A DNA stretch of 64,000 nt from Anolis carolinensis (Eukaryota): NCBI RefSeq assembly GCF_035594765.1, contig NC_085841.1, forward strand, positions 259,624,525-259,688,524. Direction: 5' to 3'. The translations under genes were made by a program, and so were the position numbers. Position 1 is the first letter of the stretch; each line of letters begins with the position of its first letter. This document shows, piece after piece, positions 1 to 64,000 of this stretch. A model generated the notes under the pieces. That model searched no databases, was not told the DNA's origin, and was given only the letters and a program-made list of their open reading frames with translations.

Positions 1-977
1 ATATAGGATGTGTCTACCAACTGACATTTACCATGAAATCAAAGTAGGCTCCCTGTATATTATATCACTGAGGGACAGTTCTGGAGAAACAGTTTTGGGT
101 AAGGCATTTGTTCTTGACAGCTTTCTGGAACCATGTTTGGGTTAAATGAGTGTTCGGTGTGATCCAGAGTATTTTTAATGTTTAAATGTATGAGTCTCCA
201 AATCTGGTCTTAACAATGCTTACTTAGAAGAAAATCTGGATTTACTGAAATTTAATATGAGAATTTAGATAAGGTACTTTTCGATGATAACTCCCAGAAA
301 CTTCATAACCATGACCTCTAGCTCTGTTTAAGGTATTCTAAAGACTACAACCTTAGCTAATATAAGAATATATAAACATGTAATATTTGTCATGGGTTAG
401 AAAATTAGACATTTTATTTTATATATTGTGTTTGAAATTTGTTCTATTGGTAAAGTGGTTTTTTCTTTTTCAAAATGTTCAAAACAATTTTTAAAGGGTT
501 AGAAAGTAGCTCATTCATGCATTACGGCTTTGGGGGTTATACATGCATGTGTTCACTTCTTAATGACCAAATCTGAATGCATTGCAAGAATTGTTACATT
601 GTGTTTTCATCTCATACACCTGACTCCAGGACATATGAAAAGAGTACAATTCATTAAGTCTGTTTCTCCTACAGACCAAATCTGTTAAATTCAATCTGCA
701 CAGATATTCTCCTTTGCTTCTAGCAATGATTCTCTAACATTTTCAATCAAACCTGCATATTCTTTGTGACTTCAGTCTTGGTTGTCATTGCAGCCTTCTG
801 TGTCAAACCGACTTGAGGGAGAAAGGACAAACTTTTTTTCTAAACTGGTTGGGGAAAAGAGAGTTAATTCTTCCTTTCAAATTTGTGCCGCCTCCTTTTA
901 AGAGCTCTGAAACAATACAGCATGCATCTTAGATAAATAATTCCTAATGCTAGTAATATTGTGTTGTCTTCTCCTAG

Positions 978-1183
978 GAAATCAACTGACCCAAGCTGTC
1001 ATGCACCAATATTACAATCCATCTAATGTCAGGAGGTTATTTGGTGTTGTGAAAAGTCCAAACCTGGAAGAAATCTTCTATAAGAGCAAACCACGCTATT
1101 TTAAACGCACCAGTTCTGCAGTTTGGAACTCTCCACCATTCCCAGGCGGCAAATCTGTATCATCTAATTTCAAGAGATGGTGA
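978..1183 (+). CDS. INCENP: INCENP copy A, terminal coding exon (IN-box C-terminal half)
   Basis: Acceptor ctcctag|G at 977/978; encodes [15 protein letters not shown]...[19 protein letters not shown]...RW*, the Aurora-binding IN-box with the TSS motif; identical to 35751-35956. Confidence 0.95.
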
Positions 1184-1242
1184 TATATTTCAGAGCTGTT
1201 TGATATTTTAAACATGTACAACTGGTTTCACCTTATAATGTT

Positions 1243-1248
1243 AATAAA
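1243..1248 (+). terminator. Candidate polyadenylation signal of INCENP copy A (copy B: 36016-36021)
   Basis: AATAAA 60 nt after the stop codon, followed by T/GT-rich sequence. Confidence 0.6.
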
Positions 1249-2428
1249 ATTTTTTCTATTTGAAACTCTTAAGGTTTTCTATGATGTTTTGTCTTTATTT
1301 GTGAGAGGAAGAGAACAAGAGCCTTGTGTCCAGTTTAATTTTCAGGGATGAGTAACTAAAAATAGTATTACGACCCAAATTCAGTTCATTCAGCCCTCAT
1401 GGTATACAAGAGTATCTGATTAGTAGAGATAAATTAGGTTCAAATCTTCAGTCATGGTGTCTTATGGAACAGCTTTGGAGCAGTTGCATCTCCAAATGTA
1501 ATCCTTCGCACAGTTTGATAGATCAAAAACTAGGGCAAATATCCAATTCTATCATTTTAACAGAAAGACAGCAAAGTAGTTAGTTTAACTGAGAAAAATA
1601 CATACCCATTTCCCCACATTGCTCTTCTATAGCCATGTTTGTATTCTAAAATTGCACCGCTTCAGTTTTCTAATCTGGCTTCGTTTATCAGCTTCTAGGT
1701 TTGTCTTTAGATCCTCATTGTTGCTTGGGTCTAGTTCTTACAAAGACTTACTCTTTTTGAGAACTTCAAAAAGATCTTCACAACATGCTTTGGTTAGTTC
1801 ACATGAATTGAGCCTAAGATAAAAATAAGAACATGTTATTGCACGTCAATGAAAAAGCAAAATCTGCATAAAAATCTGCTGAAGATAACCCCCCAGAAAC
1901 CTTAATATCCTTCATAGGTTTCTTTGCAGCTCTGATCTTAAGAAAGCTTTTGTCACAATAAGTGTACTGTTTTTAGGGTACCACAATACACTTTGATTTT
2001 ACTTTTAGAAAAGGACCTTTGGAATCAAAGGTTTTCTATTTTCTAAACCTTGTGTTAATGAATTTTAAAGAATAGAATAATGATACAAAGATGCTGATAA
2101 ATTGGTGTAAGGTCCCCTATATGTTAGAGTCTGGTATATGGAAAAAGAAAAAAAGGAAGTTCTTCCAAGTATTTTGGAAGAATCTTGACTTCATTATTTT
2201 GTGATGTTAAAATTTTCATTGGCTGATTTTGGCCAGAAATTGACCAATGGGTCAATTTTAACTAATTCATTCTTGTGCCTATCTGTTTGAGCCTTCTGTT
2301 TTAAGGTCTAAATCATGCTGATTTAGGCATCCTTTCCAGCATTATATTTATGAACATGTTTTCCTAATATGTGTATCTTGGGGTACTGAAGAAGAACTAC
2401 TGTTCTAGTTTGCCTTTTGATACAGATA

Positions 2429-2524
2429 CAGGCAGTCCCCAAGTTACAAACATCTGACTTACAAATTACTCATAGTTAAGAACAGGGATGAGACAACAGG
2501 AAGTTGTAACTAGGAAACCACCTC
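2429..2524. mobile_element. Short Tc1/mariner(Tigger)-type MITE relic (unit 2: 37202-37297)
   Basis: TA|caggcagtccccaagttac left end; degenerate inverted end gtaactaggaaaccacct. Confidence 0.45.
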
Positions 2525-4125
2525 TTGAATATTTTTCACCTAAACTATGGAACTCATGGGAGTGTCATAGGTTTACGGGCAATTTAAAGGTACACAATGT
2601 TTTTCGATCTTAGGCCTTAGATTGGATCTTGAGACAATGCTGAAAAAGCTGTTATTATTTTTACGTAAAAAGACCCGATATGATCATGGCAGCTTATTCA
2701 ATTCCAATAGGATATAATTCTTCATGAAATTTCTTTTCAACAAAGCAAGAAATAATTTTCTTCCCCTATTCAGATCTTAAAGACTATTCATAATTTGGGA
2801 CTTATGCAGTGCAAAATTCCCATTGGATTTTCTGCATGGAAACAAATATTTTGACATAGAAATATGAATTATTCTGCAGAAAATGCTGTTTTTTTTAATA
2901 AAATTGAATATTTCAGAATAAAAATATAGCATCTCAACTGTGTGTAAATGTTACACAGAGCTAATTCCCAAACACATCTTTGTGAAGCTCTGCTTGTTTT
3001 GCCCTGGGATTTTTGGATCCATATTCTTCTCTCATTCCCTGAATTAGAGTAGGAAAAGATGTGAGAAGCAAGTCAGCTATACACTGGATGTATATCAAAG
3101 CTGCAGTGACTTCAAGATACATTGCTTACTGGTCACTTTTGATAATAAACCTTAAGAAGGAAGCAAAGGACTCAAACCTTACATTGACCCAGGACTGGGT
3201 AGTCCATAGACAGAGGAAATGGGCTCCTCCCCAAGCTACCCTCCTCTAGAGGAGCTAGAAAGTTACAATGCAACTGTTCTGGAAAATAACCCAGCGAAAT
3301 TGCAGGTTCTGCAATGTGCCTGAGACAGATTTCACCCACTTTACTGACAGAGGTAAAGGACAAAATCCTGACATATTCAGGGAGACTAGTACCTTCTGCT
3401 GCACCTCATATCAGAATAGATATGTAGGCATTGTAGTAGAACTATTTGGTTATATATACTTCTCTCCTTTAATACTTAGCCACTACTCTATTCACCCTCC
3501 TAGAGGATAAAAAGGTAAGCATTTTCCCAAGGGGAGCCATACAAAGTGAATAGAAATAACTGTCCTCTCCTGTCCAACATAGGATAGCTTTTTCTCATAT
3601 GATGCTAATAAAAAGGAACCAGGTTCTTACAGTAAATATATCAACAACTTTTGAGGTCATGCAGCGGGAAGGCTGGTGCTGCCTATGAACCATCAGCTGA
3701 GCACCTGCAGTTTGCAGTCAAGATGTATCAGTATTTCACAGAGCTTTGTCAGTCCATCTATATTGTTAAAGTCTCAAGTAGAGCTCTCTCAGGTTCTGGT
3801 TTTAGAATGACAGCAGCTAATTTCATGCATGACTTGGATTGGAGGTTACAGCAGCGCAACCTGAAAGTGCAAGACAAGTTGAAATAAATATGAATAAATT
3901 TTAGGATATTACATTGGATTTGAAAAAGAAACCCTACTTTTAAATATGTTCTGCAACAAATTTAATACATTCCAATGAATTATTTTGGCTTCCTCACTGG
4001 CAAGCAGCTTTCTCATCATGATCATATGCATGAACTTCCTTGTTAGTATGGATTGCTCTGTGGCAGAACATATGCTTGCTTGCAGAAGGTCACAGATTCA
4101 ATCCTTGACATGTCTAGTTAACATA

Positions 4126-4395
4126 GGAGCCTCCAGTGGCGCAGTGGATTAAACCCTTGTGCCAGGTTGCTAATCTGAAGGTTGCCGGTTCGAATTCAAC
4201 CCGGGAAGAGCATGGATGAGCCCCCTTTATCAGCTCCAGCTCCATACGAGAACATGACAGAAGCCTCCCACAAGGATGGTAAAAATATCAAAACATCCAG
4301 GCATCCCTTGGGCAAAGTCCTTGCAGAAGGCCAATTCTCTCACACCAGATCCGACTTGAAATTTCTCAAGTCACTCTTGACTCGAAAAAAAAAAT
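4126..4395 (+). mobile_element. tRNA-derived SINE, Anolis SINE2-like (unit 2: 38899-39168)
   Basis: ggagcctccagtggcgcagtgg head with A box, ggttcgaattc B box, gaagcctcccacaaggatggtaaaa body, A-rich tail. Confidence 0.75.
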
Positions 4396-4832
4396 CTAGT
4401 TAACATTAGGTATCTGATGACATATTTTTCTGAGGTTCTGGAAAGGGGATGCTTCTGGCAGGCAGACCCAATTTCATACCATTCACTGCTGGTTTTGTTT
4501 TGGTTACACCATCATGCAGTGTTCTCTGACCATGGAGCATACTCTCACCCCACTTTTTGATGCCTATAAACTATGTTGGCAATCAAAGGGAATGATATGG
4601 TGATAGACCAAATATTTTTGACATGGAATAAGGCAGCTTCCAGTGGTTCTAATATTCTAAAGATTATTGGGAAATGTTCTTTTAAAGGTCACAAATGTTA
4701 AACTGTTGCCATTTCTTTCTTAGAGTGCGATCTGTGCTTGTCTGCCATTTGACTAAACATGTACGGGAATGTGCTATAATAGTCTTCACCTGCGCACTTT
4801 AAGCACCCATTATTTTTGGGCTTCCTTTAAGA

Positions 4833-4967
4833 CAGTGGTTCTCAACCTAGGGTCCCCAGATATTTTTGGCCTACAACTCCCAGAAATCCTAGCCAGTTTA
4901 CTAGCCGTTAGGATTTCTGGGAGTTGAAGGCCAAAAACATATGGGGACCCCAGGTTGAGAACCACCG
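4833..4967. mobile_element. Palindromic hAT MITE with SPIN/Charlie-like ends (unit 2: 39606-39740)
   Basis: TIRs cagtggttctcaacct / aggttgagaaccaccg; internal fold-back; TA-centred 8-bp flanks ctttaaga / tcttagga. Confidence 0.85.
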
Positions 4968-5624
4968 TCTTAGGAGATGACGTTCTGACCCGATTATTAT
5001 TTTGTGAAATGACATGAGATCATCCTGAATAGCAGACAATATTCTAATTTGGGCAACTGTGGAAGATTTCTGAGTAAGGATATGAAAAAAAAATCAAGTA
5101 TTAAGTATCAAAAATCAAGTATCAAGTATTATCTTTTCGGAAGGCTATGAGAGTCTATGTAAAAAAATACTGTCTGGCTTTTTTTTTTTTTTGCACAGAA
5201 AACAATGTGTTGTATAGAGAAAACCTTTAAAATACATACGCACAATCGTTTTTGTGCCAAACATTTTTGCTTTAAAAATTTCCTTTAAATTTTGCATTAA
5301 AATTCCTTTCCAAAGCACTATTATTGAGAGGCAACAAACAAAAACAGATATTTTGTGACTTAATTGTTTCAGAGAGCTGTTTTGACATGTCAAACCATCA
5401 CTTCTCATTGAGGACTTAAAGAAATGTCAATATTTAGCCTTCGTGGTCATGGCCTCTCCAATGACTGTCAGAAATGCTGATTTGTGGCTTAGAGATAGCA
5501 ATGCAAGCTGAGAGCACTTTGCAGTAACTACATCATTTTGTGGCACATTAAGACTAACCTCTTATTTTCCATACGCTTTTTGCGACTGTAGACTTCTTAA
5601 TCAGTTATTCCTGAAAAGTGTTAA

Positions 5625-5750
5625 TTGTACATTGATGTGTTTATGGGCATTGAATGTTTGCCCTATGTGTGTATAATGTGATCCGCCCTGAGTCCCCTTC
5701 GGGGTGAGAAGGGCGGAATATAAATACTGTAAATAAATAAATAATAAATA
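5625..5750 (+). mobile_element. L2-type LINE 3' tail fragment
   Basis: ccgccctgagtccccttcggggtgagaagggcgg stem-loop followed by (aaat)n. Confidence 0.7.
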
Positions 5751-6176
5751 CATCAGCCTAAGATGCTGGCTGTCATTTGTGCAGGAAGATAAACCCGATG
5801 ATAAAGGTAACATGTGCTTCCTTTAAGACTAAGAGGGAAAACTGGAGAAACACTCACCGAAGTATCTGTAGGCTGCAATTGGGATGCCTGAGTGCTTGCA
5901 GAATTTACTTACTATTACTTCTCATAGATCACTATGTTGTAAATTGAATTCTCTAAAGTAAGACACTCAAAGAAGACAACATCTCTGAAGTTACACCTCT
6001 TCAGCCTGAGGAAAACAAATATAGATTGCCAGCCAGACTAATCTTATTGCTTGAAAGCAAAATCATCAGATATTTAGTTTACTCTCTTTGAATGATGCGA
6101 TAAAGGCTTATTAATAAGATGTGTCAGGGGACAGTTTGGGCAAAGAAGAGGACTTAGTCCAAATACGTAACAAAGT

Positions 6177-6313
6177 TGTGTTGTCGAAGGCTTTAATGGC
6201 CACAATCACTGGGTTGCTATGATTTTTTCCAGGCTGTATGGCCATGTTCCAGAAGCATTCTCTCCTGACATTTCACCCACATCTATGGCAGGCATCCTCA
6301 GAAGTTGTGAGGT
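6177..6313 (-). mobile_element. Penelope-like element fragment
   Basis: gtcgaaggcttt...gcattctctcctgac...atctatggcaggcatcctcaga motif shared with 8100-8412; family assignment by recognition. Confidence 0.6.
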
Positions 6314-6455
6314 ATCATACCAAAGTTATCTTTATTGCACTTCGGATCTTTTGGTCCTTCAAAGAGGAAAGGTGAGTTTTCATCCACCTTTCCATTAAAG
6401 TATAAGCTAAACAAACAAAATTGTAAGTTGAGTATGAGAAATTGTTGGATTGTAT

Positions 6456-6783
6456 AGGTAAAGGTAAAGGTTTTCCCCTAACATTAAGTCTAGTCATGTT
6501 TGACTCTGGGGGTTGGTGCTCATCTCCATTTCTAAGCCGAAGAGCTGGCGTTGTACCTAGACACTTCCAAGGTCATGTGGCTGGCATGACTGCATGGAGC
6601 GCAGTTACCTTCCTGCCTGAGTAGTACCTATTGATCTACTCACATTTGCATGTTTTCGAACTGCTAGGTTAGCCGAAGCTGGGGCTAACAATGGGAGCTT
6701 ACCCCATTCCCTGGATTTGAACCACCAACCTTTCGGTCAGCAAGTTCAGCAGCTCAGCGGTTTAACCTGCTGCGCCTCTGGGT
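6456..6783 (-). mobile_element. Sauria SINE (unit 2: 41229-41556)
   Basis: (aggtaa)n tail on +, i.e. acctttacct on -; reverse-complement match to 11890-12214. Confidence 0.85.
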
Positions 6784-7577
6784 CAATGATAGGGAGCAGT
6801 ATTTAGAAATTTAAGTCACATGGGACCAAAATGCTATAAAATATGTAAAGTGAAAGGCCCAAAGAGTCTTTAGATGTCTCCATTAATTTGGGAGCCAGTT
6901 CAGATAGGTGGATTGATGAATGGATGGATAGATAGATCTTGTCCATTAGCCTTCTTTAAATGATGGAGAAGTGGATTGAGTTTACATAACAGTTCATGGA
7001 ATCATTTCCTTCTGCTTCCTGATTCCAGGACTGACACTGTTGCGTAAGACCATTGCTTATTTCAATAGATCTTTATGTCAATATTTGTTGAATAAGAACA
7101 GTAAACATTAAACATTTTGAAGGGAAGCCAAAATCTAATGGTCAAAGGTCAAACCTTTTGCTGTCAAAAAAGTTTAATTAAAACATTTTTCTAACTTTGG
7201 GAATAACTGTTCCCAAATGCCAATTAGTTATTTCTTTCATGTCATTTGTACTCTGTTGATCACATTCTACCCAGGGCAAATTCTACTAATGCTATTGAAA
7301 TGTATTAATTTATAATAAGCCCCAATCTGGTGATTCCACTTACAGTGCTTTGCGGTGAAGAAGCAACCAATGAGCACCTTTCTACCATTAATGACAAAGT
7401 GCTTTCAAATTAGAGACGGTCGTTTCTTCAGTTTGGGGAGGTTGCATTGGACTCCCACAGTCCTTCTGAGGTCACACTCCATTTCACTGCTACCTAAATT
7501 TTGTAGCAACTGCAATAGCTCTATGATGTTGGAGGGTGAACAAGCGTACTCTAGTTCTAGAGAAGTCTTTAGTTCCA

Positions 7578-7712
7578 CAGTGGTTCTCAACCTATGGGTC
7601 CCCAGATATTTTGGCCTTCAACTCCCAGAAATCCTAACAGCTGGTAAACTGGCTGGGATTTCTGGGAGTTGTAGGCCAAAACACCTGAGGACCCACAGGT
7701 TGAGAACCACTG
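7578..7712. mobile_element. Palindromic hAT MITE, same family as 4833 (unit 2: 42351-42485)
   Basis: TIRs cagtggttctcaacct / aggttgagaaccactg. Confidence 0.85.
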
Positions 7713-7839
7713 CTTTAGGAAGAGTCTCATAGGATTTTAGATGAAACAGAGACCTTATTAGCAGGTTGATTTTTCAGTGCTAGGAAAGGAAGGTGGGTGC
7801 AATAAGGAGAGGGCTCAGTATTGGCTGGATTAGAAGAGG

Positions 7840-8056
7840 ACATCCGATGCATTTGAATGCAGTTTGATATCACTTGGACTGCCATGGCTCAACGCAATGG
7901 AATCACTGGAGTTGTAGTTCGTTGAGGCACTAGCACTGTTTCACAGAGAAGACTACAGGCCTTGTGAAAATATAATTCCGGGATTTTATAGCACTGAGCC
8001 AAGGCAGTTCAAGTGGTGTCAAACTGCATTCATTCTTCAGTGTGTAGGTGCACCCT
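7840..8056. mobile_element. Old fold-back MITE (PIF/Harbinger-like)
   Basis: Inverted arms gaatgcagtttgata...ggctca / tgagcc...tcaaactgcattc; ends in gtaggtgcaccc. Confidence 0.55.
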
Positions 8057-8099
8057 AACATAAAGAAACAAATTCGCTTCTTCAAGTGCAGCATTGATC

Positions 8100-8412
8100 A
8101 GTTGGTAAGTGGCTGTGACTTTTCCGGGCTGTATGGCCATGTTCCGGAAGCATTCTCTCCTGATGTATCGCCTGCATCTATGGCAGGCATCCTCAAAGGT
8201 TGTAAGGTATGTTGAAAACTAGACAAGTGGGGTTTACTGTATATATTTGTGGAAGGTCCAGTGTTCTTGTCTGTTTGAGGCAAGTGTGAATTGTGCAATT
8301 CACAGCATTGAATAGCCTTGCAGTTCAAGGTCTGTCTGTTTACTGCCCGGGGGAATCCTTTGTTGGGAGGTGTTAGCTGGCCCTGATTGTTTCTTACCTG
8401 CAATTCCCCTGT
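8100..8412 (-). mobile_element. Penelope-like element fragment (unit 2: 42873-43185)
   Basis: Same core as 6177-6313, extended through ctggccctgattgtttcttacctgcaattcccctg. Confidence 0.6.
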
Positions 8413-8417
8413 TTAAC

Positions 8418-8484
8418 TAGTAGAGTCTCACTTATCCAACCTTCGCTTATCCAACGTTCTGTATTATCCAACGCAGTTTGCCTT
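8418..8484. mobile_element. One end of a mariner-type MITE (body missing)
   Basis: agtagagtctcacttatccaac with repeated ttatccaac; matches the reverse complement of the terminus of the element at 20106-20714. Confidence 0.7.
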
Positions 8485-9890
8485 TATTATTTATTTATTT
8501 ATTTATTACATGCATTTATACCCCGCCCTTCTCCCCAAGGGGACTCAGAGCAGCTTACATTCTGCCACGAGGGCCAGCAACAAATATACTATAAAACAAA
8601 ACAATTAAAACATGATAAAAACATGATAAAAATGTGATAAAAAGTATATAAAAATTAAAACGCTGCAAGGCAGTGATATTACACCATCCTCAGTCATTCA
8701 CTACTGCTACAATTACAGATTTGCGACCCAATTACATCAGCCAGTGAGCTTATTCGCTGAATGCCTGGGCGCAGAGCCAAGTTTTTAGTTTTCTTCTAAA
8801 TCCCAGGAGGAAAGGGGTTTGCCGGATATCGCTGGGGAGGGAGTTCCACAGCCAGGGAGCCACCACCGAGAAGGCCCTGTCCCTCGTCCCCACCAGCCGC
8901 GCCTGCGAGGCAGGTGGGATCGAGAGCAGGGCCTCCCCGGAAGATCTTAAGGTTCTAACAGGCTCATAGGAGGAGATACGTTCGGATAGATAGGCAGGAC
9001 CAGAACCGTTTAGGGCAGGGGTCCTCAAACTTTTTAAGCCGAGGGCCGGTCCACAATCCTTCGGACTGTTGAGGGGCCGGATTATCATTTGAAAAAAAAC
9101 AACAAATAAATTCTGATGCACACTACACATGTCTTATTTGTAGTGCAAAAACAACAACAATGAAAGAACAATACAATATTTAAAAATAAAAATAATTTTA
9201 ACCAACATACATTTATCAGGATTTCAATGTTCCCATGTGCTCCTGCTTCTGGCCAATGAGATAGTCAAGTTAATTAGGGTTGTTGTTGTTGTTGTTGTGT
9301 GCCTTCAAGTCATTTCAGACTTTGGGTGAGCCTAAGTCTAAAATGTATTTATTTATTATTTATTTATTTACTGCATTTATTTACTACATTTGTATCATAC
9401 CCTTCTCACCCCAAAGGGGACTCAGAGTGGCTTACAAATTATATGTACATACAATATATTATATTATTAGCATAGCACAATATTAGCATTATATATTACT
9501 TTATTGAACTATACCACTATACTGTAATATTATTAGTAATATTATATGTAACATAGAATATATAACTAATATTATTATATGGTATTATTATTAGTGTTAT
9601 ATTGTATTACATTATAATATTATTATCAATATTATATGTATATCCAATATATTATATTATAAAACTGAGGGCGGGGGTCAGGTAAATGACCTCGGAGGGC
9701 CGCATCCGGCCCCCGGGCCTTAGTTTGGGGACCCCTGGTTTAGGGCTTTGTAGGTCAAAACCAGCACTTTGAATTGGGCTCGGTAGCATATCGGCAGCCA
9801 GTGGAGCTGGCTTAGCAGGGGGTTTGTATGCTCCCTGTAAGCCGCTCCCATTATTAACCTGGCTGCTGCCCGCTGCACCAGCTGGAGCTT
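8485..9890 (-). mobile_element. 5'-truncated L2-clade LINE interrupted by a hAT element (unit 2: 43258-44663)
   Basis: ORF2 C-terminus ALNGSGPAYLSE...RAFSVVAP(W/R)LWNSLP...RKLKTWLCAQAFSE* at 9015-8750; stem-loop and (aaat)n tail at 8485-8560; resumes at 9738. Confidence 0.9.
9016..9737. mobile_element. Non-autonomous Charlie-type hAT element, 722 bp (unit 2: 43789-44510)
   Basis: TIRs caggggtcctcaaact / agtttggggacccctg; perfect 8-bp TSD gtttaggg at 9008-9015 and 9738-9745. Confidence 0.95.
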
Positions 9891-9987
9891 TTAGGGATCT
9901 TTCTGGCTGGGCATTTTGAAGGCCCCTCCCCTAAACTACAAGCTCGGGGATTTCAGGAGGGATGCACACTTGCTTTTAACTCTAGTG

Positions 9988-10077
9988 CAGGCATGGGCCC
10001 TCCAGGTGTTTTGGACTTCAACTCCCACGGGAGTTGAAATCCAAAACACCTGGAGGGCCGGAGTTTACTCATTCCTG
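9988..10077. mobile_element. Short hAT MITE (caggcatggg family) abutting the promoter
   Basis: Internal palindrome ccctccaggtgttttgga / tccaaaacacctggaggg; near-TSD ctctagtg / ctccagtg. Confidence 0.8.
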
Positions 10078-10139
10078 CTCCAGTGTAACCCCGAGACTTC
10101 CCTTCCTTCCGTTGCGCCTAAGCCCAGCCCCTTCCTGGG

Positions 10140-10343
10140 CTTTACTTCGGTAGCTGCGTCTCAGCCAATAGCCGGCCCCGTCGTGGAGGCGCGCGCTGCT
10201 CATTGGACCGCGGGGAGTGACGTTGTTTGAAAAAAATATTTCAACGGCGACAAGCCTGGGCTGCGGGCGTTTAGAGCGCGGGTCGCTGTTAACAGTTGGC
10301 TGCGGAAATTTCGCCTCTGTAGGCTTGGATCCGCAAAGCAGCA
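10140..10343 (+). promoter_or_regulatory. INCENP copy B CpG-rich G2/M-type promoter and 5' leader
   Basis: CpG cluster; CCAAT 10165-10169; inverted CCAAT 10202-10206; TGACGT 10218-10223; CHR TTTGAA 10226-10231; MYB-type CAACGG 10242-10247; no TATA box. Confidence 0.8.
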
Positions 10344-13147: not shown

Positions 13148-13188
<41 letters not shown>

Positions 13189-31601: not shown

Positions 31602-31647
<46 letters not shown>

Positions 31648-47920: not shown

Positions 47921-47961
<41 letters not shown>

Positions 47962-50900: not shown

Positions 50901-53900
50901 TAAGAAATAATTTAGCCATCTGTAACATGTGATAGATTATTTGTTCATTAAACAGCCTGGGCAAAGGCAATAACAGGCTGGGATTTCAACTGTTAATGTT
51001 CTTATGTGTCTATGCAGCAGCTTCAATGGCAAACAGTTGCTGATGCCCAAAACTCCATCACAGAAAAATCGCCAGAAAAAGAGTCGTATTTCATCTGCTA
51101 AGCACGACCAGTTTGTCAAAAAGAGGTAGGGTGGAATATTATATGGAGGTCAAGTTGACAATGAGTGATGGGATAATTTACAATTGACATTCTAAGTTGA
51201 CATTTGGGGAAAATATTGAGATTGGAAGAAAGCCGGCATCATGTAATGCTTGAGTGTTAAAAAAAAAAAAAAGGTTCTTGAACAACCAGAGTTGGAATCT
51301 TCGCTTGTTCGTGGAAACTCACTAGGTGCCCTTGGGCAAATAACACATTTTCAACCTCAGGAAAGTAATGGCAAACTCCTTTTGGGGGAAAAATGTGATG
51401 GGGCCACATCAGTTACCCACACAAATCAGTGCTTCTGAAAACAACTGGGAAACTTTGTACAGATTTATTTGGATACCAAAGCTTAATGCTCCATTAAGAT
51501 TCAACTGCACACTGAAAATTCCAGGTTCTGATCTATCTGAAATTTCTTTGACCTTAGAAGGGTTTTGAAGCTTACCTGCTGTCTGCAGTGAATTAAAAAT
51601 TCTTCAATATATCTACTATCTTTTCTGAAAAGAAAAGAAATAAAGAAGAAACAGTGATATAAGATAATGGTGCAACTGCCTGTCCTTTAAATATCTTGTT
51701 TTACATGTATAGAGCTTTCAGACATTAACAAACTACCAGTTTAGTTCTCCATGCATCAGATATCATGTGCAGAAGAAGGCAGTAATGGAAAGCCTCATTC
51801 AAGTCTATACAAAATTTCCCATTTTGATCATAGTGAGATTTACGAGTGATGTGTAATGTGTGAGGTTGTGGGTTCATTATCATGTTGGGACTGACAACAG
51901 CAGGATTTTGTTAAGTTTCATATTGAAACATCTATCAGTTCAATTAATGAAAAATGTATCAAAAACTTCATGTAGATAAATAGAGAAGTTGGTACTTCTC
52001 CAAGATCTTCCAGGGAGGCCCTCCTCTCACTTCCATCTTCCTCACAATTAGGTCTGGTGGGGACGAAAGAGGGGGGCCTTCTCAGCCATGGCCTCCAGAC
52101 TCTGGAAATCCCTCACCAGGGAGATTAGGTTAGCTCCCTCGCTTTCTTCCTTCAGGAAACAGTTAAAGACCTGGATGTTTCAGTTGGCCTTTGGTTAGAC
52201 AGTCATTAGATAATCAGTCCCAGATGGTATTATTCTATCCTGTATTTTATTAGGTCCTTATTATCTATGCACTTAACTCATTATTTTATTCTTGCATTGC
52301 TGCTCCAGTTTCTCCACCTAAGTAGATGATAGAACTGCGCCTGGTGGTTGACTGATAACTATCAACTGTTTTAGTATTCTTGTTTTATACTGTATTACTG
52401 TATTTATCTTTTATACTATGAATTGTATTTATATTGTTGTTTATTTTGTCAATGTTGTTTGGGCCTTTGCACCATGTAAGCCGCCCCAAGTCCCCACGGG
52501 GAGATGGTGGCGGGGTATAAATAAAGTTGTTGTTGTTATTATTATTATCTCGTAATATCTATTAGCTTTACTTTTCAGTACACTTGTACCCTATCATTTT
52601 TCTGACAATGTCTTCCTTTTATTAGATTATCAAAAAGAAATGGTAACCAGGCAAGTCTGCAACATGAAAGAGATCTGACTATTTTTGCAGAGAATATATC
52701 ACCTTGTTGCCGTGTGACTAGGTCTCGTGCTGCCAGGTCAGCCAGGACCTCAGAAAATTCTGTTCAGAAAGCTACTGTTCCTTTAGCTAAAGGGAGAATA
52801 GCACTAGTGGAAATTAGTGCTAATGAGAGGCACAGTGCTGAATTGCACTTTAAAAAAACACCACCCCCGGAAAAGAAGGTTTCACTGAGCATCCCATTGT
52901 CATCTCAAGAGACCTCTACAAACAGAGAGCAACCTCTGTCCAGAGTTTCTTTGATTGTGATCCCAGATACCCCTGAAGCACAAATAAAAAAAGAGGAGCG
53001 AGGAGCTTCCAAGCTGAAAATTGCTAATGGGTCAATTGCCAAAACCACTAAAAGTAAAGAACCCATCACAGATGAGAAGACTGCATGTGCTCAACAACAA
53101 GAGAATTGTCAACCTTCTGATATGGAAGTCAAGTTGAACCTCAGTGAAGATCCATGGACACCCCGAGTACCAAAAGAAAAACGTCAGTCAGTGCGGCGAA
53201 GCCTAATGGGTAGGCCATCCCTAAAATGCAGCACCTCTTTGGTTGCACGGTGCTCACTAAGTGCCAAAAGGAAAAGAGCTGTCCAGAAATCTATGTTGAA
53301 GCGTAAAGCATCCCAGCAGTCATCCAGTGCTTCTGGGCACCCAAGCTGTAAGTTTGTACACCATGAGATAGTATTACTTTTCTTCGCTCCCTCTATTTTA
53401 TCTGCCTGTCCATTGATGTGTTGAATCAAAATGTTGGGAAACTGAAATTATTATTATTATGTTTTAAGTAACCATGGATTTTTCAAGGAAGAGAATCCTC
53501 GTGTTAAAATATCTGTCTCAGTTCAAGGTCTTTGAAGCACTTTCAAAAGTAGAAAAAAATGAGGCCTGATAAATAGAGAAAGTCTTAATTTTTGGCAGGT
53601 TTGAGTGAAATGTGTGCATTTAACTTGCTGCTGCATTCTGCAACATAATGGGAACCATTAGATTTCACAGCATTCACATTCTAATATTCTAGAGTGCTAA
53701 TAAGAAACATGAATTAGGATAAGATGTGTTAGAGGACAGAAGTCTTTTTGAAATAGGAATCCACCTACTGATCTATGATTTCAGAATAATCACAGTTTGT
53801 GATATATAATTTTTATTAAATGATTTTATATCAAGTGTACAGGGAAAGAGTGAGAACATAATTTATAGAAAAGTCCAGAAAAGAGTAGAATAGATAGGGA

Positions 53901-56900
53901 ACTACATCTAGAAAAAGAATTAGAATAATCACAATTTAGTCATATTTTCTACTGCAGCTTGCTCCATTCAAATTTCTCTCAAGAAGAGAGGTCTTAATCT
54001 AAGTGATGGATATAATGTGTGTGTAAATTAGGAAGAAAGTTGCTGGGTTTTTTTTCTAATTGTAGAGTTGTGTCCATTCACTAGTCTTGGAAAATATTTT
54101 CTTTTCTTTCAATTGGACCTTTTTTGTGCTTAAAAGCATTGTGACTAGCGTTGTAATCAAGATTCTACAGATCAAGAAAACAAATGTTTAAGTCTGTTAC
54201 TAGTTTATTTTGTGTTTCCCTAACTTCCATCGGTTTTTTGGTTGGAAATTTAGAAAATTAGCATTTTGTTTCCCTTTTGGGGAGGACAGAACATCCAAAC
54301 TGGATTGATTTGCTTGCTTCTCTGGAGGCATAAAACTGTGAGGTCACTCTAGCCCAGGGGTCCCCAAACTAAGGCCCGGGGGCCGGATGAGGCCCTCCAA
54401 GGTCATTTACCTGGCCCCCGCCCTCAGTTTTATAATATAATATTTTTATATCAGTTTTAATAATATAAAATATTGTATATACATATAATATTGATAATAA
54501 TCTTATGTTATACAATATAATACTAATAGTAATATCATATAATAATATTAATTATCTGTTATATATTACATATTATATAATAGTATAGTGGTATAGTTCA
54601 ATATAGTAATATATAATGCTAATATTGTGTTAAGCTAATAATATAATATATTGTATGTACATATAGCTGCTCTGAGTCCCCTTCGGGGTGAGAAGGGTGG
54701 GATATAAATGTAGTAAATAAATGCAATAAATAAATAACTAATTTTAGACTTAGGCTTGGCCAAAGTCTGACATGACTTGAAGGCACACAACAGCAACAAC
54801 AACAATCTTAATTAACTTGACTATCTCATTGGCCAGTAGAAGGTCCACACTTTCCATTGAAATCCTGATATGTTTATGTTGGTTAAAATTGTTTTCATTT
54901 TTAAATATTGTATTGTTCGTTTGTTGTTGTTGTTGTTGTTGCACTACAAAGAAGACATGTGCAGTGTGCATAGGAATTTGTTTGGATTTTTTTTTTCAAA
55001 TGATAATTCGGCCCCTCAACAGTCTGAAGGATTGTGGACCGGCCCTCTGCTTAAAAAGTTTGGGGACCCCTGCTCTAGCCCCTTCTACATTGCCATATAA
55101 AATCCAGATTATCTGTTTTTAACTGGATTATTTGGCAATGTAGACTAATACAGTCCAGTTCAAAGTAATTTATGTAGATTATTGGATTTGATAATTTGGA
55201 TTATATGACAGTGTAGAAGGGGCTTCTGTAGGCAGAATACTCCTACTTGCCAATTCAGTTTTGTCCCTGCCTTCTCTCTATTGGCATGTTGTGGCTAGTC
55301 TCCGCTCTGCCCTTTTACTTTATTTGATTTCCCTTTGTTCTATTTCCTTTCTATCCTTTCAAAGGAAACCTTTTCTGCGTCCGCCTCTCTTGAGTAGCCT
55401 TTTAAAGGTCTTTTTCTTAGCCTCATTCATTCACCCCCTTCCTCCCTCATCTGTCTGGGTTGCTACATGGATAAGGAAAAATAAGTCTATATGTGGAGTT
55501 GTTTCCTAAAAGTACCAAATCCATCTGAACACATTTTACAGGAATTAAAACCACATACTGAGGATATGCATTCTTTTGCTATAAATTCCTTTTTCCAAGC
55601 CCTGTATAGTAGTCTCGCTTATCCAAAGTAAATGGATAAATAATAAATTAATAATAATAAATAATAATAATGGATAAATAATAAATGGATAATAAGGAGA
55701 TATTAAGGAAAAGCCTATTAAACATTAAATTAGGTTATGATTTTACAAATTAAGCACCAAAACTTCGTGTTATACAACAAATTTGACAGTAAAAGTAATT
55801 CAACATACAGTAATGCTATGTAGTAATTACTATATTTACGAATTTAGCACCAAAATATCACGATGTATTGAAAAATGCGTTGGATAATCCAGAATGTTGG
55901 ATAAACGAGTGTTGGATAAGTGAGATTCAGGGCCGTAGCCAGAAAAAAATTTCAGGGGGGGTGTAAATTTGGGGAGGGTGAACCCCTAGCACCCCCCACC
56001 CCCGCTACAAACCTGTCAATATCTGCTGGAGATAGTGCCTGGAGGGGACTCTTAATGTTTTGCGTCTCATAGATTTAGCATGGGGATTTGGTTAACCAGT
56101 TAAAATTCATGAGTAAACCAGATTTTTTTTTAATAACCTGAAAAATTTCGGGGGGGGGGGGAACCCCTAAATCCCCCCCCCCCCTCGCTACAGGCCTGGT
56201 GAGACTCTATTGTAATTTGATATATGCTCATAGTTTTGAGCTGTTCATAACATTTTACACTCCTAGCCAACAATGTGCTGCAGTCTGTAACTCATTTTCC
56301 AATTTATTTGGATTTGATACCATTGGGAAGCAAACTCCACATATGAGTTTCTTGTGTTTTTCTTGCATAGGCCAATGTGGTCCAACCTTTAGTTACCCAA
56401 GGGCCAATCAAACTTTAGTATAGGAATTTGAAGGCCAGAAACATTCCAGAAAGTAAACGAATTCTTAAAAACTTAAAGCAGTAAGAAGGGTAAACGATTT
56501 TTTTTCCAAATGTTAAATTAAAATATTTTTCCAGTAAAAAGGGCAAGGGCCAATAGAAATGAATTGGTGGGCCGCATGTGGCCCGTCGGTTGGACCACAC
56601 TGGCTATGATAGAAATGAACATATTTATGTTTCTTGACCTATAGCCCCAGCAGCTGTGCATTCAGAAGATGAGGAAACAGCAACCGAATCTACGTAAGTT
56701 GACTAAAATTTTCAGATTGTATCTAAAGTCTACAATAAAACTGCTGGCAACATTGTTCTCCCCTCTTTGCAGCCTTTTCAAGCCAACTCCCCAAGCTGCA
56801 AAAGCAGAATCACTGGGCTATAAGAGGGAGGGGGCTAAAGAAATGTGCTGTTGGATAAACTAACATCTGCTTGTGCACTGCTGAATGTAATCCGTTGACT

Positions 56901-59900
56901 TCTGAGAGTTCCAAATTCCCACATGAAAACAGGACAGCTGTTGAGCTTTTATAGGGCTTTGTGTAGTCTAATACAGAATGTGGGTAAGAGTTTAGCTGAC
57001 AACGCTGGTCACTTCATTTCATTGCGTTAATGTATTTAGTGACAGAATGATAAAAAGGAAATAGTACTGTTTTATTTATATATTTATGTCTTATGTTTTT
57101 TCTCCCTAGGTCAGAGCTAGATCCCTCTTCTGATTCTCAAGGGGTAAGTTCTGAAAAGAGGTAAAGTAAAGCCTAAAGATATAATTCTATATTGTACCTC
57201 CTTACCTAGAAGAATCAGATTAATCTAATCTTTTTAAAAATAAAATAGAATTACAAGCTTGGTAGATGAAGGGAGTTCTATGGCTATAGCATAACTTGAT
57301 TTCAGTAAGGCCTTTGACAAGGTTCTCTATGATATTCTCATGAAGAAACAGTAAAACGTGGGCTAAACAATGCTTCCCAATGCTTCCTCATCATCCTGGA
57401 AAGAAGTGACTAGTGTGGTACCACAGGGATCTGTCCCGGGCTATGCTATGGAATCATGGGAGTTGTAGTGTTGCAAAGTCTTTCCTCTTCTCTGCCAAAG
57501 AGTGCTGCTGTCTCACCAAACTACAAATCCCAAGATTCAGTGGCATTGAACAATGGCAGTTAACATATCAAATTCCATTCATTCTATGCATCCTTGGACA
57601 CAGAGCAACAGTTTCAAATTGAGAAAAACACGCCACCTAAACATTAGAAAGAATTTGTTAGAGTTGTTCAACAGCAGCATTTGGACTCTCAGAATATGAT
57701 GGAGTGGTTTAGGAAGCTGGGTATGTTTAGCTTGGAGAAGAAAAGGCTAAGGGCACATGTTAGCCACCTTTCAATATTTGAAAGGCTGTCACATTGAGGA
57801 TGTGGCAAGTCGTTTTCTGCTGCTTTTGGAGACTAGGACATGAGCAATTCATTCAAAATTCAGGAAAATATTCTGCCTAAACATTATGAAGAACTTCCTG
57901 ACCTGGTTGGCAGTGGAATATGCTGCCTCGGAGTGTAGTGGAGTCTCCTTCTCTGGGGGTTTTTAACAGTCTGGGTGGCCATCTGTTGGGAGTGCTTTGA
58001 TTGTGTCTTGCTGCGTAGAATCATAGAATAATAGATGGCAAAGGTTTGACTAGTCTTTTCCAAGTATGATTCTATGATCATTATTGGAACAGGATTCATT
58101 TCTAAGTTGATACACATAGGTTTCTTCTGTCAAAGGCTGCTTCTTTAAAGGTGGCAGGCAAATATTCTACATAAATAAAATTATGGTTGAGTAGCAGGGA
58201 CGATACCTGAAATCCACAGGTTACATTGAGCCTAACAGGCCATTTGTCCTGTTCACTAGAATTGCTGTATGGGAGTCATACAGCATTTGAGTATTACAGC
58301 TATCAGAAGTTCTCTTCAATAAACTGTGCTGGATTGGGCTTCTGGGAATTGTAGTTCAACAAGCATGAAGACTACGTCCGCTCTTGGGCAGTAAATAATC
58401 ATATGACAAAACAACTAAACTAGAAAACTCTCCTGAAAGAGTGTTTAATATTTCTTTCTTTTTTAAGGTTCCTTGCATTCTTAATTTAAGAGTAAAATTG
58501 TTTTTATAACAAGTTTTGATCTGTCATAAGATTGTGTTTAACTATGTTTCACTTTATATGGGGCTATGCTGAGAATGTGTTTGCCTTACAGCATGCTATT
58601 GAAACCATGAGGACAACACCAAATTCACAGAAGGCCAGCATGACTGCAAATCTCCAGGCTCAAGAAGATCCGCAAAAAGGAGAACACAAGGGTCAGTGGA
58701 TCAGGAATAATGGAGTTCACTGAGTAACGGAGAACTACAACTTGAGTTAAAAGAGCATCTTTAAGGAAGGGGAAGCTTGATATTTCCTAGAAGATGCTGG
58801 TTTGATAGTTAGGGGAAAGGATACATGTTGTTCACAGCTAGGACACAGATGGCGGATACACAGCCTTGTACATGTTGATCAGGTACTATTTCTCATCATT
58901 CCACATTTATATTCAAGCTGGCTGCTGCTGATGAGAATTGGAATCCACTGGTAGCCTTTAATTGTAGAATCTTGACTGAGTACTTACCTTGTTCTTGAAG
59001 TTGACTATGTAAAATGGAGCCAGTTGCTGTCTCAGCTGAAACTTTTGCAGAACTTTTTAAATCAGTGTGGACTGCTATGAATTCTAGAAAGAGATAGATA
59101 AACATGTAATAAAATCTCTACTATCATGTTTCACTAGGAAATAGTAATACTTTTCATTCCTTTTTTCTGGCTGAAAAGGTGAGTGTGTGACTATTGATGC
59201 CCTGGGTTCCCCAATTTGTTTTTTTTTAACTGTCTTACCTCTGAGACAAAGAAGAAGGGGGGAGATATCAGTGCTTGATTAAGCAAGGAAAGGGTGAAAA
59301 AAACCATTTTGGGACCCAAAAAGGGGTGCAAATATTATAGAATCAGAGTTGGAAGAGACCACATAGGCCATTTAGTCCAATCCCCTGCCATGCAGGAAAT
59401 GAGCACTCAAAGTACGCTTGACAGATGGCCATCCAGCCTCTTGTTTAAAAGCTTCCAAGGGAGGAGCTTCTACCACAGTCCGAGAAAGAGAGTTCCACTG
59501 TTGGACAGTTCTCTTGGTCAGGAAGTTCACCCTAATGGGTGAATCTCCTTTCCTATAATTTTCTCAGACTCATTGCTCTGAGTCCTGGTCTCCAGGGCAG
59601 CAGAAGACAAGCCTTCTCCTTCTCCTTTATGTCAGCCTTTCAAATGCGGTAAAATATGGTATATGCCACCCAAATAATAGAGGAATAACTGCACTGAGCC
59701 TATTCACTTCCTTCATATACATAATCATAACTCATATATTTGAATATGTAACTTAATCAAAATTCAATTCTATTTATGGGTGAATCAGTTTTTAGGATTG
59801 CATCTTCTAAACATGGCATTGATCTGAATCTTCAGAAGTGGATGAACTGTTTTTCCCTTTATAATGTTTGCTAACATAAAATGTGTTGCTGGTTTTTTTT

Positions 59901-62542
59901 TAAGTAATCGTAGCCCAGTTGCTTTTCTTTGTTTGCCTTATAAACACTTAGGTAAAGGGATTAAAATAAGTTTTTTAAAAACCTCTGTAAAATAGTAAAT
60001 TATAAGCATATCTGTCCTGGTAATTACAAATGTTCATCGTCTTGATGATACAGTTTTCACCTCATGCTTTTATCACATAAAATAGTTCAGTGACCAGTAA
60101 CTGTAGTTGCTTTTCTCTATGCAGTGGGCAGCCCTGAAAAGAGTGAAGAAATTCGAAAACCATCCCAGAACGTTGGGTATGTTGTCTGTTGGGTCTTTTG
60201 ACAAACTTCATGACCAGTATTCTTTTCTTAACCTTGGTATATTTACTCTTGTATCTATTGTTTGTGTATATGCCTGTGCATCACCTATGAGTAAGACTAC
60301 CAGACCATTTCTATTTGTTTGTTACTGGGAGCAGGAACAAAGCTTCATTGCTTGTTATCTCACATGAGTGACAAAAAGAGTGACCCAGTCATACACAGGT
60401 TCAAAGTGTTGGAAAATAAGATGAATGGAGGTACAGGGAAAGAAAAGAATGGGAAAAAACATAAAATAGTATTCCTCTTTGTAGTTGAGGAAGGGAGAAT
60501 TTTCAGGCTGGGTTACAAATAAGAGATAATGCCAAATTAGGTTCATGGATTTGAATCCCCTTCTATGTAAGGGAGACTTGGCTCCTTCTACACAACTGTA
60601 TAAAATCCACATTGAACTGGATGATATGGCAGTGTGGACTCAGATAATCCAGGACCCTTCCACACAGCCATATAACCCAGAATATCAAGGCAGAAAATCC
60701 CACAGTATCGGCTTTGAACTACACATATGCCATATATTCCTGCTCAAAGCAGATAATGTGAGATTTTATTCAGCTGTGTGGAAGGGGACCCAGTTCAAAG
60801 CAGATATTGTAGGTTATCACTAAGGGCCCTTAGTGAAATCGAGATATATCCTTGAGCTGACATCTTGGTTGGGTTGCTGACCTGAAGGCTGCCAGGTTCA
60901 AATCCAGAGAAGCCTCCCACAAGGATGGTAAAAACATCAGGGTGTCCCCTGGGCAACATCCTTGCAGACGGCCAATTTTCTCACTCCAGAAGCAACTCCG
61001 GTTGCTCCTGACACACACACACACACACACACAAAAGCTGACATCTTGCCTAAGGATTCTTTTAAGCCCCTTAAAGGACTCAGAAAGAAGCCAAGGGATG
61101 GAAGATGCGTGGTGCTTTCAAGAGGACCGATGATAGAATATTGTACTGGTGTGTTCTGTATAATGAGTCCTCCGTTAATTTTTATATACAAAACTAAATT
61201 TACAGGAGACAAGCAAGTTATAAAAGAGCGCTTGGTGATCTAGAGGATGAACAAGAGAAGCTCTCTCCACCAAGAAAAAAGGTTCCGTCTCCTTACCTTG
61301 CCAGCAAGGTGAGACAAGTATTGTATCCTAGAGAACATGTTAAGTTTATTAATGGTTTCCCAAGGACTGATTATATTTTGTACTCTTTAGGTTGTCCGGC
61401 CATTCAAGACATTCTTGCACACAGTGCAGAAGAACCAAATGCTTATGGGAACCCCAAGCTCTGTGAGCCGAAGCTGTACAGTAAAATCATTCCTCAAGCA
61501 AAACACTCCTTTAAGGACCACTCCCCAGGTAACATGAGATCTTTTTATAGGTGGAAAGGGGGGAAGAGCAGCTTCTGAACTAAAATTTACCTGCTCAGGT
61601 GTAGTGCAGGGGGAGAAAGTAATAATAAATATGCAAATTGTCAGGGGGATTCTTGGTATGGATGGGAGGACCAATCCACAATGCCTGGGTTTTCCCTACA
61701 TGCCAAACCTAACTAGCAGGAGCTCAATGTTCTTTTTCTGTTTTCACTATTATGTTTTTTCATCATTAATAATCTTGCAAAAGTCTTCAGACTTGACAGG
61801 CATTTTTACATCCGTTTCATTTAAAATTTATTTATTTATTTACCCCATTTATACCCTGCCTTCTCCACCCCAAAGGGGACTCAAGGCAAGGTTACATATG
61901 GCAACCATTTGATACCTCACACATACAAATAAGCTTAAAATAGGATTAAATAAAAACAATTCATATTAACGTTTAAAAACATTACATTAATATTAAAAAA
62001 GATCAATGAAAAGGGTTGGGGGTGTATGCAAACAAATGCAAAATTACTGTGTTTTGCCCTTTTAAAGAAAAACTTGATTGGGTTTAGGGACCCAAGGGAC
62101 TGAATGATGTTAAGTGCTGGCATGAGACAGTGTGACAGAATAGACAGGCAAAGGGACTGATTAATTTTATTAATATTTTATCTATTTATAAGACCAAATT
62201 ATCAAAATATGCACATTGATTTGAACTATTTTATCTTACCATTAAGATTCTGGCGTGTTTGTTTAATTTGCAGACTATGTATTCAGTATCCCAGCATAAG
62301 TCTCTTGAAAGTGGTGAAGTCCATTGCTGCTTCTTGGGTTAACAGAATGGTAGTACAGGTCTTATGAAGTGTAGGTAAAGGTACAGTTGACCCAGCAAAG
62401 CTTTATGGCAATAGGGTGGAATGCTAGATGCAAGTCTATTTCGGTCATATTGTTAACAATAGATATCGAGTTAACAATACGATTCACTTTTCAAAGGTAT
62501 TAACTATATCATAACTTTCTCTTCATACAGGGAGGGTTTGTT
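45117..62542 (+). CDS. INCENP: INCENP copy C, exons 1-11 (3' part beyond window)
   Basis: Exons 45117-45135, 49060-49204, 51018-51125, 52626-53347, 56645-56693, 57110-57143, 58592-58691, 60125-60176, 61206-61308, 61391-61528, 62531-62542; no coding difference from copy B seen. Confidence 0.93.
54355..55072. mobile_element. Non-autonomous Charlie-type hAT element, 718 bp, private to copy C intron 4
   Basis: Perfect 16-bp TIRs caggggtccccaaact / agtttggggacccctg; perfect TSD ctctagcc (54347-54354, 55073-55080); single empty site at 19574-19581; 718+8 equals the 726-bp offset jump. Confidence 0.97.
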
Positions 62543-64000
62543 GTAAGTAACAAGATTGATCTTAGATTAGATGTGTTTGCACATAATTAACAGTGTGTCA
62601 TCCAATGGCATCCCTAACATGCATAGCAACATCCATTCTTTGAAGGGGCTGCCTGGCCTTTGCAACAAACCTTACTAAAATGTAGACTACTTGCACAATT
62701 TCTAGTGGCATTTCACTGTTTTCTCAATGTTGTACAAGAACCATGGGCATTTCATTTCAGAATGTGATTATTCATATTTATCATTTCATTCATCCAATGT
62801 TTCAGTTTATTTACACTACCCACTTAATTTAATTTAGATTAGAAGGATCAAGACAGGCAACAAAGTGCAAAAGACAAACTATAATATTATTGAACATTGC
62901 TTCGAGGAGCTTTGTTGTCTTTTTTAGATCTTGCCCATTTTATTTTAATAATGTAGCTGTTCATAGTTAATTCTAGTCTTTTTAGCTGCCCAGATCAACC
63001 CATCTAACAGTTTCTACCTGAACTAAACATACAAAAAAGGAGGAGGAAAATAATGTTGAAAAGTGCATAGTCTGCATCCTTACTTAGAAGTAAGTCCCAC
63101 AGACTTCAGTGAGACTTTCTCTCCACCAAAATAAGTGTGTTAGACTCCTTCCTCAATGTAACAGTTGTATTCAGCAGATGTCTGCTTAGTTAGAAAGAAA
63201 ACCCTGGCATGGAAGTTATTCAAGTTACTGGGAAAACTAATTGATTATTCCATTTTATATCAAATCATTTTGCTTATAGACCCTAGTAGAAATGTTAGTG
63301 TTTGTGTGTTGACAGGTTTGAGATCAGAAAAATAAGCTTAAGAAAAATATCCCTACTTCAAAAGGACTAATGGATCAATGTCCCATCTCACATTACTAGA
63401 TTTGGTTGATACTTACCGGTATATATATTTGAAAACGCAGACCAAAGAGAAGGCTGTAACACCTGGTATTGATTTCCAATTTACTGGTCTCTTTAAGTAA
63501 ATAAAACTTCTCTGGGGTGATCTATGCCTAATTTGGCCCAGGTTTTGTTCCTCTGCAGTAAGTTTGTTGGCCAGTTAAAATTCAAATCAATTTGTGAAAA
63601 TCTCTCTTTAGTTGCCACTCAGTACTTTGTACTTGCACATGCTACTTCAACTTCATTGGGGAAACAATAAACAAACCTTTCTAACATTGAGACTTCATTC
63701 TCTTCCTCCTCCTTCATGCTTCTTAGTGTATGTGTGGCATCTTGGCAGAAAATTTCATTTATTTATTAGTTATCAAGACTTGTTTCCTATTTAGGAAAGA
63801 CGTGTTGTGATGACAGTTGGCAGAACATAATCTTTTTCAAGTGACAAAGCAATGCTTTAAGTACATATCTAGAAATTACTGTTGCTTTGAATAGATGAAA
63901 ATCCAATGTGCATCCTACCCCAGCACCTGGAAAAGGTTACTTTAAAAACAATCCACTTCCATTGCTAATTATGCTGTTTGAAGACTAATTCATAGACATT

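Follow-up and report, generated by a model that had tools for sequence, protein, structure and literature searches.

Why does one chromosome in the green anole, Anolis carolinensis, a model lizard, carry several nearly identical copies of INCENP? The INCENP protein scaffolds the chromosomal passenger complex, and genes of this kind are expected to be dosage-sensitive. The stretch analysed here, called the window below, is 64,000 bp of the assembly rAnoCar3.1 (GCA_035594765.1; CM069367.1:259,624,525-259,688,524, on a record of 368,751,108 bp), and it holds INCENP genes in direct repeat. We asked whether the copies are real, how they arose and how old they are. The answer that we consider very likely is a real tandem amplification of INCENP at its ancestral locus, founded by a microhomology-mediated join, expanded by exchange between units, very recent, and probably polymorphic.

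Self-comparison showed the window to span 1.84 units of a directly repeated segment whose period is 34,773 bp. Positions 1-19,582 recur at exactly this offset at 34,774-54,355 save for three mismatches (at 477, 7838 and 8854). Beyond a 718-bp insertion, 19,574-28,503 recur at 55,073-64,000 with a sole difference of one AC unit (2 bp) in an (AC)n tract at 25,535/61,034. In total, the two window copies are separated by three single-nucleotide polymorphisms, one AC unit and one 718-bp miniature inverted-repeat transposable element (MITE) of putative hAT type. Since no difference falls between 8,855 and 19,573, the two promoter regions are identical. Parts of three INCENP copies are present, namely the last coding exon of gene 1, all of gene 2 and exons 1-10 of gene 3, and the 18 coding exons of gene 2 reproduce the RefSeq protein exactly. 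The initial annotation had described the 34,773-bp periodicity, the parts of three copies with one of them fully intact, two identical promoters and few differences between units, and all of this proved accurate. It had also counted at least three INCENP genes; the head-to-tail array is real, and the count has to be corrected to five units.

The remainder of the array was found by exact look-up of three 855-amino-acid (aa) protein variants on CM069367.1, which gave five coding starts (259,599,365; 259,634,868; 259,669,641; 259,705,125; 259,740,583). These loci agree wherever they overlap and, merged, give 201,835 bases free of gaps; neither the window nor this merged region of 202 kb contains a single N. 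Self-alignment of the merged region resolved exactly five direct units of 35,506, 34,773, 35,483, 35,459 and 49,781 bp, about 191 kb in total, between unique flanks. All four unit-to-unit joins are identical: the unit end ...GATGCATT passes into the unit start TGAATGCAG..., and a TG is common to both parental contexts. No homology between the breakpoints beyond this TG was found in the 400 bp around both, and homologous recombination between breakpoint repeats was rejected because TG is the sole shared sequence. The first ~200 bp of each unit (7,854-8,050 and 42,627-42,830 in the window) resemble their own reverse complement with 68% identity, so the left founder breakpoint lies at the edge of a hairpin-capable repeat. 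Because one founder join occurs four times, the array goes back to one non-homologous, microhomology-mediated duplication, and later copies would therefore have been gained by exchange between units.

The single-copy state that preceded the array is preserved in Anolis sagrei, which has one orthologous INCENP gene with a divergent paralogue lying head-to-head upstream as in A. carolinensis. No second INCENP copy was called in the 10 kb downstream of the A. sagrei gene. The DNA of A. sagrei is colinear from the left flank into the unit start, and again from the unit end into the right flank and onwards (L006 49,680-49,890 against 198,366-198,572 of the merged region, 88% identity). Because A. 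sagrei has a single copy and is colinear with both flanks, the array arose in place after the two species split. It has the marks of a tandem duplication: the join of unit end to unit start is novel, not ancestral, and the flanks on both sides are unique.

We searched exons singly and used database proteins for full-length comparisons; joined coding sequences served solely to check the translation against RefSeq and to compute substitution rates. The IN-box, including its TSS motif, was recognised in two exons (Pfam PF03941, INCENP_ARK-bind; 33.6 and 26.9 bits, cut-off 22), and the last exon matched the solved human and Xenopus INCENP chains (E ~1e-19 to 1e-20, best 6.5e-20). Exon 2 matched INCENP_N (PF12178, the Survivin/Borealin-binding region) weakly, its 16.6 bits falling short of the required 25. 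For the Anolis proteins the only precomputed domain is PF03941; PF12178 is kept in many other squamate orthologues. A profile-free search with the large exon returned full-length relatives, and a word-index search with Candoia INCENP led to an A. carolinensis cluster of 12 distinct sequences under 19 RefSeq accessions (XP_062823539 to XP_062823557), that is, five genes with three or four isoforms each. The window exons are identical to XP_062823546/550 and XP_062823547/551. Full-length orthology to vertebrate INCENP is established by this exact match to RefSeq INCENP and INCENP-like proteins together with the tree placement given below. The five genes are thus already in RefSeq as INCENP and INCENP-like, and we found no publication describing this A. 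carolinensis INCENP array. What is new here is the recognition of a young, probably polymorphic array, its exact join, and its coincidence with a reported B-chromosome cargo.

Each of the five units encodes the intact 18-exon isoform of 851 aa with GT-AG introns. Among their proteins three residues vary: unit 4 has P11L and L46R, and units 2 and 3 have G215E. The INCENP lineage from which they stem is under constraint, because dN/dS (the ratio of non-synonymous to synonymous substitution rates) against A. sagrei is 0.27 at a synonymous divergence (dS) of 0.25; the ratio peaks at 0.51 over the 90 N-terminal residues and falls to 0.15-0.25 in the conserved parts of the C terminus. Judged by these rates, this is the lineage of a constrained, functional gene. 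We see no sign of a new function, because the five proteins differ at only three residues, and the consequence of the amplification would most likely be only a raised INCENP gene dosage.

Comparison of all five units gave 80 variable columns, with pairs of units differing at 6-59 sites (0.02-0.17%). Divergence between A. carolinensis and A. sagrei at synonymous sites exceeds the difference between units 150- to 1,500-fold, in agreement with the earlier description of the locus as a very young or gene-conversion-homogenised amplicon of complete INCENP genes. The inner units are most alike, units 2 and 3 differing at 6 sites. The variants private to unit 1 concentrate in its first 1.2 kb, and all 19 that are private to unit 5 fall in the 3' part of that unit, an edge effect in the terminal units that would be expected if unequal exchange homogenised the array. 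Of the 34 variants private to unit 4, 33 crowd into 5.8 kb (0.6%; window-equivalent 11,039-16,842, merged 116.4-122.3 kb). This cluster includes P11L and L46R and looks like a tract imported from a different allele via exchange between homologues.

Two insertions add to the history of the units. The 718-bp MITE, which appears hAT-like by the length of its target-site duplication and its repeat ends alone, is in units 1, 3, 4 and 5 and is missing from unit 2 only. A new insertion of the MITE into one copy was considered and rejected, as four of the five units carry it. The A. sagrei alignment has nothing at the site, so the MITE-less state is probably ancestral, and the element would have spread among units via unit exchange. 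Unit 5 carries an 11.5-kb Ty3/Gypsy element and a further insertion of 2.7 kb in its introns. The Ty3/Gypsy element has the structure LTR-internal-LTR-internal-LTR (LTR, long terminal repeat) with a period of 5,192 bp, its copies are 99.97% alike, and gag (266 aa) and pol (1,201 aa) are open; the element is very young, and the other four units lack it.

These observations can be arranged into a simple course of events. One non-homologous join with 2 bp of TG microhomology would have linked the end of a 34.8-kb segment to its own start, duplicating the promoter, the 18 coding exons and ~6.7 kb of 3' spacer. Exchange between units, by unequal crossing-over and gene conversion, would then have expanded and homogenised the duplicate and brought the reference haplotype to its present five intact copies. 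An origin by founder join and unequal exchange is well supported by the structure of the array.

Is the join present in other animals? Twenty sequencing runs from eight studies of the same organism contain the stretch, all as Logan contigs, and we compared four runs from four studies over window positions 39,650-45,649. In run X1 (2017), a 202-nt contig covers 42,589-42,790 without mismatch and bridges the join with 38 nt on one side and 164 nt on the other. X1 comes from another animal, because at 40,031 it has A where all five reference units have C; elsewhere it shows about one difference in 3.4 kb of unique sequence. At the bridging contig the depth is 15.4, while neighbouring contigs of the unit reach 17-20, a weak fit to several copies, the depth of such contigs being no copy number. 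Run X6 (2019) has a contig that terminates at 42,628 and a second that begins at 42,627, so that the assembly forks exactly at the join. This is the pattern of a de Bruijn graph in which the unit end has two continuations and the unit start two predecessors. Contigs of X3 (2025) and X14 (2023) run from 42,464 and 42,466, respectively, to 42,628 and then go on with unlike letters, 797 and 449 of them. At 40,728 and 41,846 the alleles of both runs are of the unit-5 type, and no join-bridging contig was found among the contigs listed for either. Over the unique parts, X3, X6 and X14 differ from the window by ~0.2-0.5%, which exceeds the difference between units. We conclude that the join is real and that the reference animal is not alone in having it. 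The duplication is very recent, because the units differ less than alleles of different individuals, and the amplified haplotype appears to be younger than ordinary allelic variation. Copy number may be polymorphic, because two runs list no bridging contig. As a separate observation, several runs whose contig sets are small (256-770 Mb) nevertheless contain 71-94% of the 6-kb stretch's words, introns included; this could reflect high copy number or search selection.

Haplotypes or overlapping contigs of one true copy might have been laid in tandem by the assembler, and the two window copies, which differ by only five events, could pass for heterozygosity. However, there are no gaps, and the five units have different indels, encode three protein variants and include a unit-specific retrotransposon. 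One novel join is repeated four times between differing units. Moreover, the contig from 2017, independent and exact, bridges this join in another individual and argues against an assembly artefact, as does the fork at the join in another run. Differences between units are at most ~11 kb apart, a spacing that by our estimate should fall within the length of a HiFi read, and the units should therefore be resolvable. A false duplication, which the initial annotation had named as the outcome that would overturn its amplicon, is hence very unlikely. Somewhat less remote, if still improbable, is an array that is old within the carolinensis lineage and owes its near-identity to continuing gene conversion (concerted evolution). 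Mosaic variant sharing and the edge effect do show active exchange between units, and A. sagrei dates the origin only to after the species split. Yet at their outer edges, where homogenisation does not reach, the terminal units differ from the inner ones at only a few dozen sites, and the MITE is missing from one unit and, according to the alignment, from A. sagrei. In addition, three of the four independent runs are further from the window over unique parts than the units are from each other, and two of these divergent runs lack a join-bridging contig among the contigs listed. We therefore prefer a recent and probably polymorphic amplification, against which several points have to be set. The count of five comes from one assembly, and the depth of Logan contigs gives no copy number. 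The unlike letters of X3 and X14 are only presumed to be right flank past the last unit. Copy-number polymorphism, although probable, is deduced from contig topology, and a contig can attest presence but not absence. None of the runs is recorded as RNA, and those guessed to be RNA contain introns too and are therefore probably DNA. Finally, the changes among copies, three non-synonymous and one synonymous, are too few to detect selection.

A chromosome-segregation gene in multiple copies also invites explanations by selfish transmission. Sex linkage, suggested earlier for this amplicon, is unlikely. The array sits at its ancestral site, a locus syntenic with a 345-Mb record of A. sagrei, and anole sex chromosomes (X) are microchromosomes, whereas the record carrying the array measures 368.75 Mb. 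A link to the B chromosome of A. carolinensis is a live hypothesis, albeit an unlikely one, and would be compatible with the structural explanation while adding a function. The 34.8-kb unit might have been captured by the B chromosome or derived from it. On this reading the extra INCENP dosage would aid, or help to suppress, a transmission advantage of the B chromosome or of a centromere. Sequencing of flow-sorted A. carolinensis B chromosomes, as relayed by two papers (PMC6406668, PMC11573200) that cite Kichigin et al. (2019, Mol Genet Genomics 294:13), found INCENP and SPIRE2 as well as small regions of autosomal origin and insertions of LTR retrotransposons. This reported location lends the idea of drive indirect support from the literature. 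As far as these papers report it, the B-chromosome INCENP thus shares with the array the species and the gene, extra copies of a small autosome-derived segment, and LTR-retrotransposon insertions, represented in the array by the young intronic Ty3/Gypsy element of unit 5. Cell-division genes on B chromosomes are moreover regarded as candidates for drive (PMC8695967). Against such a link, the B-chromosome INCENP, again as relayed, lies on a flow-sorted supernumerary chromosome, whereas the array lies on a standard chromosome, between ancestral A-chromosome flanks in one gapless sequence; and gene copies on B chromosomes show signs of pseudogenisation according to reviews (PMC7835784), whereas all five array copies are intact. 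The full form of the idea, in which the 34.8-kb unit with its TG join is the amplified B segment, the array is its birthplace or a host response, and dosage affects non-Mendelian transmission of the B chromosome or a centromere, seems to us an outside prospect of the same order. Since INCENP was independently reported on the B chromosome, the array makes the origin of B cargo, and the idea of cheating by cell-division genes, testable in a vertebrate.

We also examined whether INCENP is normally single-copy in amniotes, as the initial annotation had assumed. This common assumption is wrong because sauropsids carry two old INCENP paralogues, not one gene. A search with an alligator protein found 'INCENP-like' genes in turtles, crocodilians, birds and squamates, frequently sharing a contig with 'INCENP'. 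Two clades, both containing all four of these groups, emerged from a quick maximum-likelihood tree of 41 proteins (SH-aLRT, the Shimodaira-Hasegawa-like approximate likelihood-ratio test, 100), and the array protein grouped with A. sagrei and other iguanians in the squamate 'INCENP' clade (SH-aLRT 97-100). Platypus joins the INCENP side under midpoint rooting, on a long branch at an open fork, and cannot alone root the tree; we therefore assign neither sauropsid clade as the strict orthologue of mammalian INCENP. The paralogue to the left of the array is annotated with 743 aa, has INCENP_N and IN-box matches, and shares ~33% identity in the large exon with its best relatives, crocodilian 'INCENP-like' proteins, and it falls in the 'INCENP-like' clade found across sauropsids; that of A. 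sagrei stands in the same head-to-head arrangement (L006:1-5,041). Chicken has a second INCENP paralogue that is weakly expressed and unable to replace the canonical gene (PMC6681789). The five-fold amplification hits one paralogue only and, among the species examined, was found only in A. carolinensis. The old sauropsid pair and the array both place more than one INCENP gene at one locus, but the pair is ancient, inverted and ~33% identical in the large exon, whereas the array is direct and less than 0.2% different.

Ordinary tandem copy-number variants, such as those of the human amylase genes, arise by a microhomology join and expand by unequal crossing-over. Like the array, they go back to one founder join and consist of whole-gene units whose number varies; their inner units are homogenised and their outer edges divergent. 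What sets the array apart is its cargo, since amplification is not usually observed for the gene encoding the chromosomal passenger complex scaffold. In the unisexual gibel carp, incenp is among the expanded meiosis genes (PMC9439954). Both carp and anole thus have lineage-specific extra incenp copies, discussed in the carp for oocyte meiosis; most of the carp copies lie scattered at a distance from the parent gene, in a polyploid genome, whereas those of the anole form a local tandem array in a diploid sexual lizard. Oikopleura dioica has two INCENP paralogues with divided mitotic roles, an example of a duplicated INCENP being kept and used (PMC6681789). Its paralogues are diverged and subfunctionalised, whereas the anole copies differ at no more than three residues. 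Five near-identical intact INCENP copies, probably varying in number between animals, amount to a natural dosage series for a core segregation gene. With the founder join known to the base, a single junction k-mer or polymerase chain reaction can genotype any animal or read set.

The features of the window and its surroundings are collected in Table 1.

Table 1. Coordinates of array features (window positions unless a locus is named)
Feature	Position	Strand	Details
Unit 1 tail	1..7853	+	INCENP gene 1 last coding exon 978-1183 (IN-box, stop codon), exact copy of exon 18, and 3' spacer
Unit 1/unit 2 join	7852..7855 (between 7853 and 7854)	.	From self-alignment of the merged 202-kb region
Complete unit 2	7854..42626	+	34,773 bp
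Unit 2/unit 3 join	42625..42628 (between 42626 and 42627)	.	Join examined in independent runs
Unit 3, first 21.4 kb	42627..64000	+	INCENP gene 3 exons 1-10 (45,117-61,528)
CpG-rich probable promoter and first exon, gene 2	9750..10500	+	GC 0.55-0.58, CpG observed/expected 0.6-0.8
Gene 3 copy of promoter region	44,523-45,273		Identical to that of gene 2
INCENP gene 2 coding span	10344..35956	+	18 coding exons, start codon 10,344, all introns GT-AG, equals XP_062823547/551, 851 aa
Gene 2 exons 1-6	10344-10362, 14287-14431, 16245-16352, 17853-18574, 21146-21194, 21611-21644		
Gene 2 exons 7-12	23093-23192, 24626-24677, 25709-25811, 25894-26031, 29240-29349, 29428-29548		
Gene 2 exons 13-18	30244-30366, 30988-31163, 31341-31455, 31869-31955, 34526-34673, 35751-35956		
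Coding site of residue 215	18224	+	Glu215 in units 2 and 3; Gly215 in units 1, 4 and 5
Coding variants P11L and L46R	14,299 and 14,404		Private to unit 4
Non-autonomous DNA transposon (MITE), 718 bp	54355..55072	.	16-bp terminal inverted repeats (CAGGGGTCCCCAAACT), 8-bp target-site duplication 54,347-54,354 / 55,073-55,080, intron 4 of gene 3
Empty MITE target site CTCTAGCC	19574..19581	.	Unit 2 alone is without the MITE
Ty3/Gypsy element, unit 5	L001:32,742-44,281	antisense in INCENP intron	Window-equivalent insertion ~32,363
Diverged INCENP paralogue	L002:1-3,631	-	Outside the window, to the left of the array; 6.4 kb from array gene 1 in head-to-head orientation

An Rfam scan of the window gave no match, and Tandem Repeats Finder reported only one small AT-rich repeat in it. 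Introns 16 and 17 of the same INCENP gene share a 302-bp direct repeat with 98.3% identity (562-863 and 32,912-33,213, also 35,335-35,636), which is probably a young short interspersed element (SINE) or a solo LTR. Just upstream of each promoter, within 8,753-9,738 and 43,526-44,511, lies a squamate SINE-like element with a protein-like translated frame; adjoining it, at 9,011-9,738, is an older relative of the 718-bp MITE with 84% similarity.

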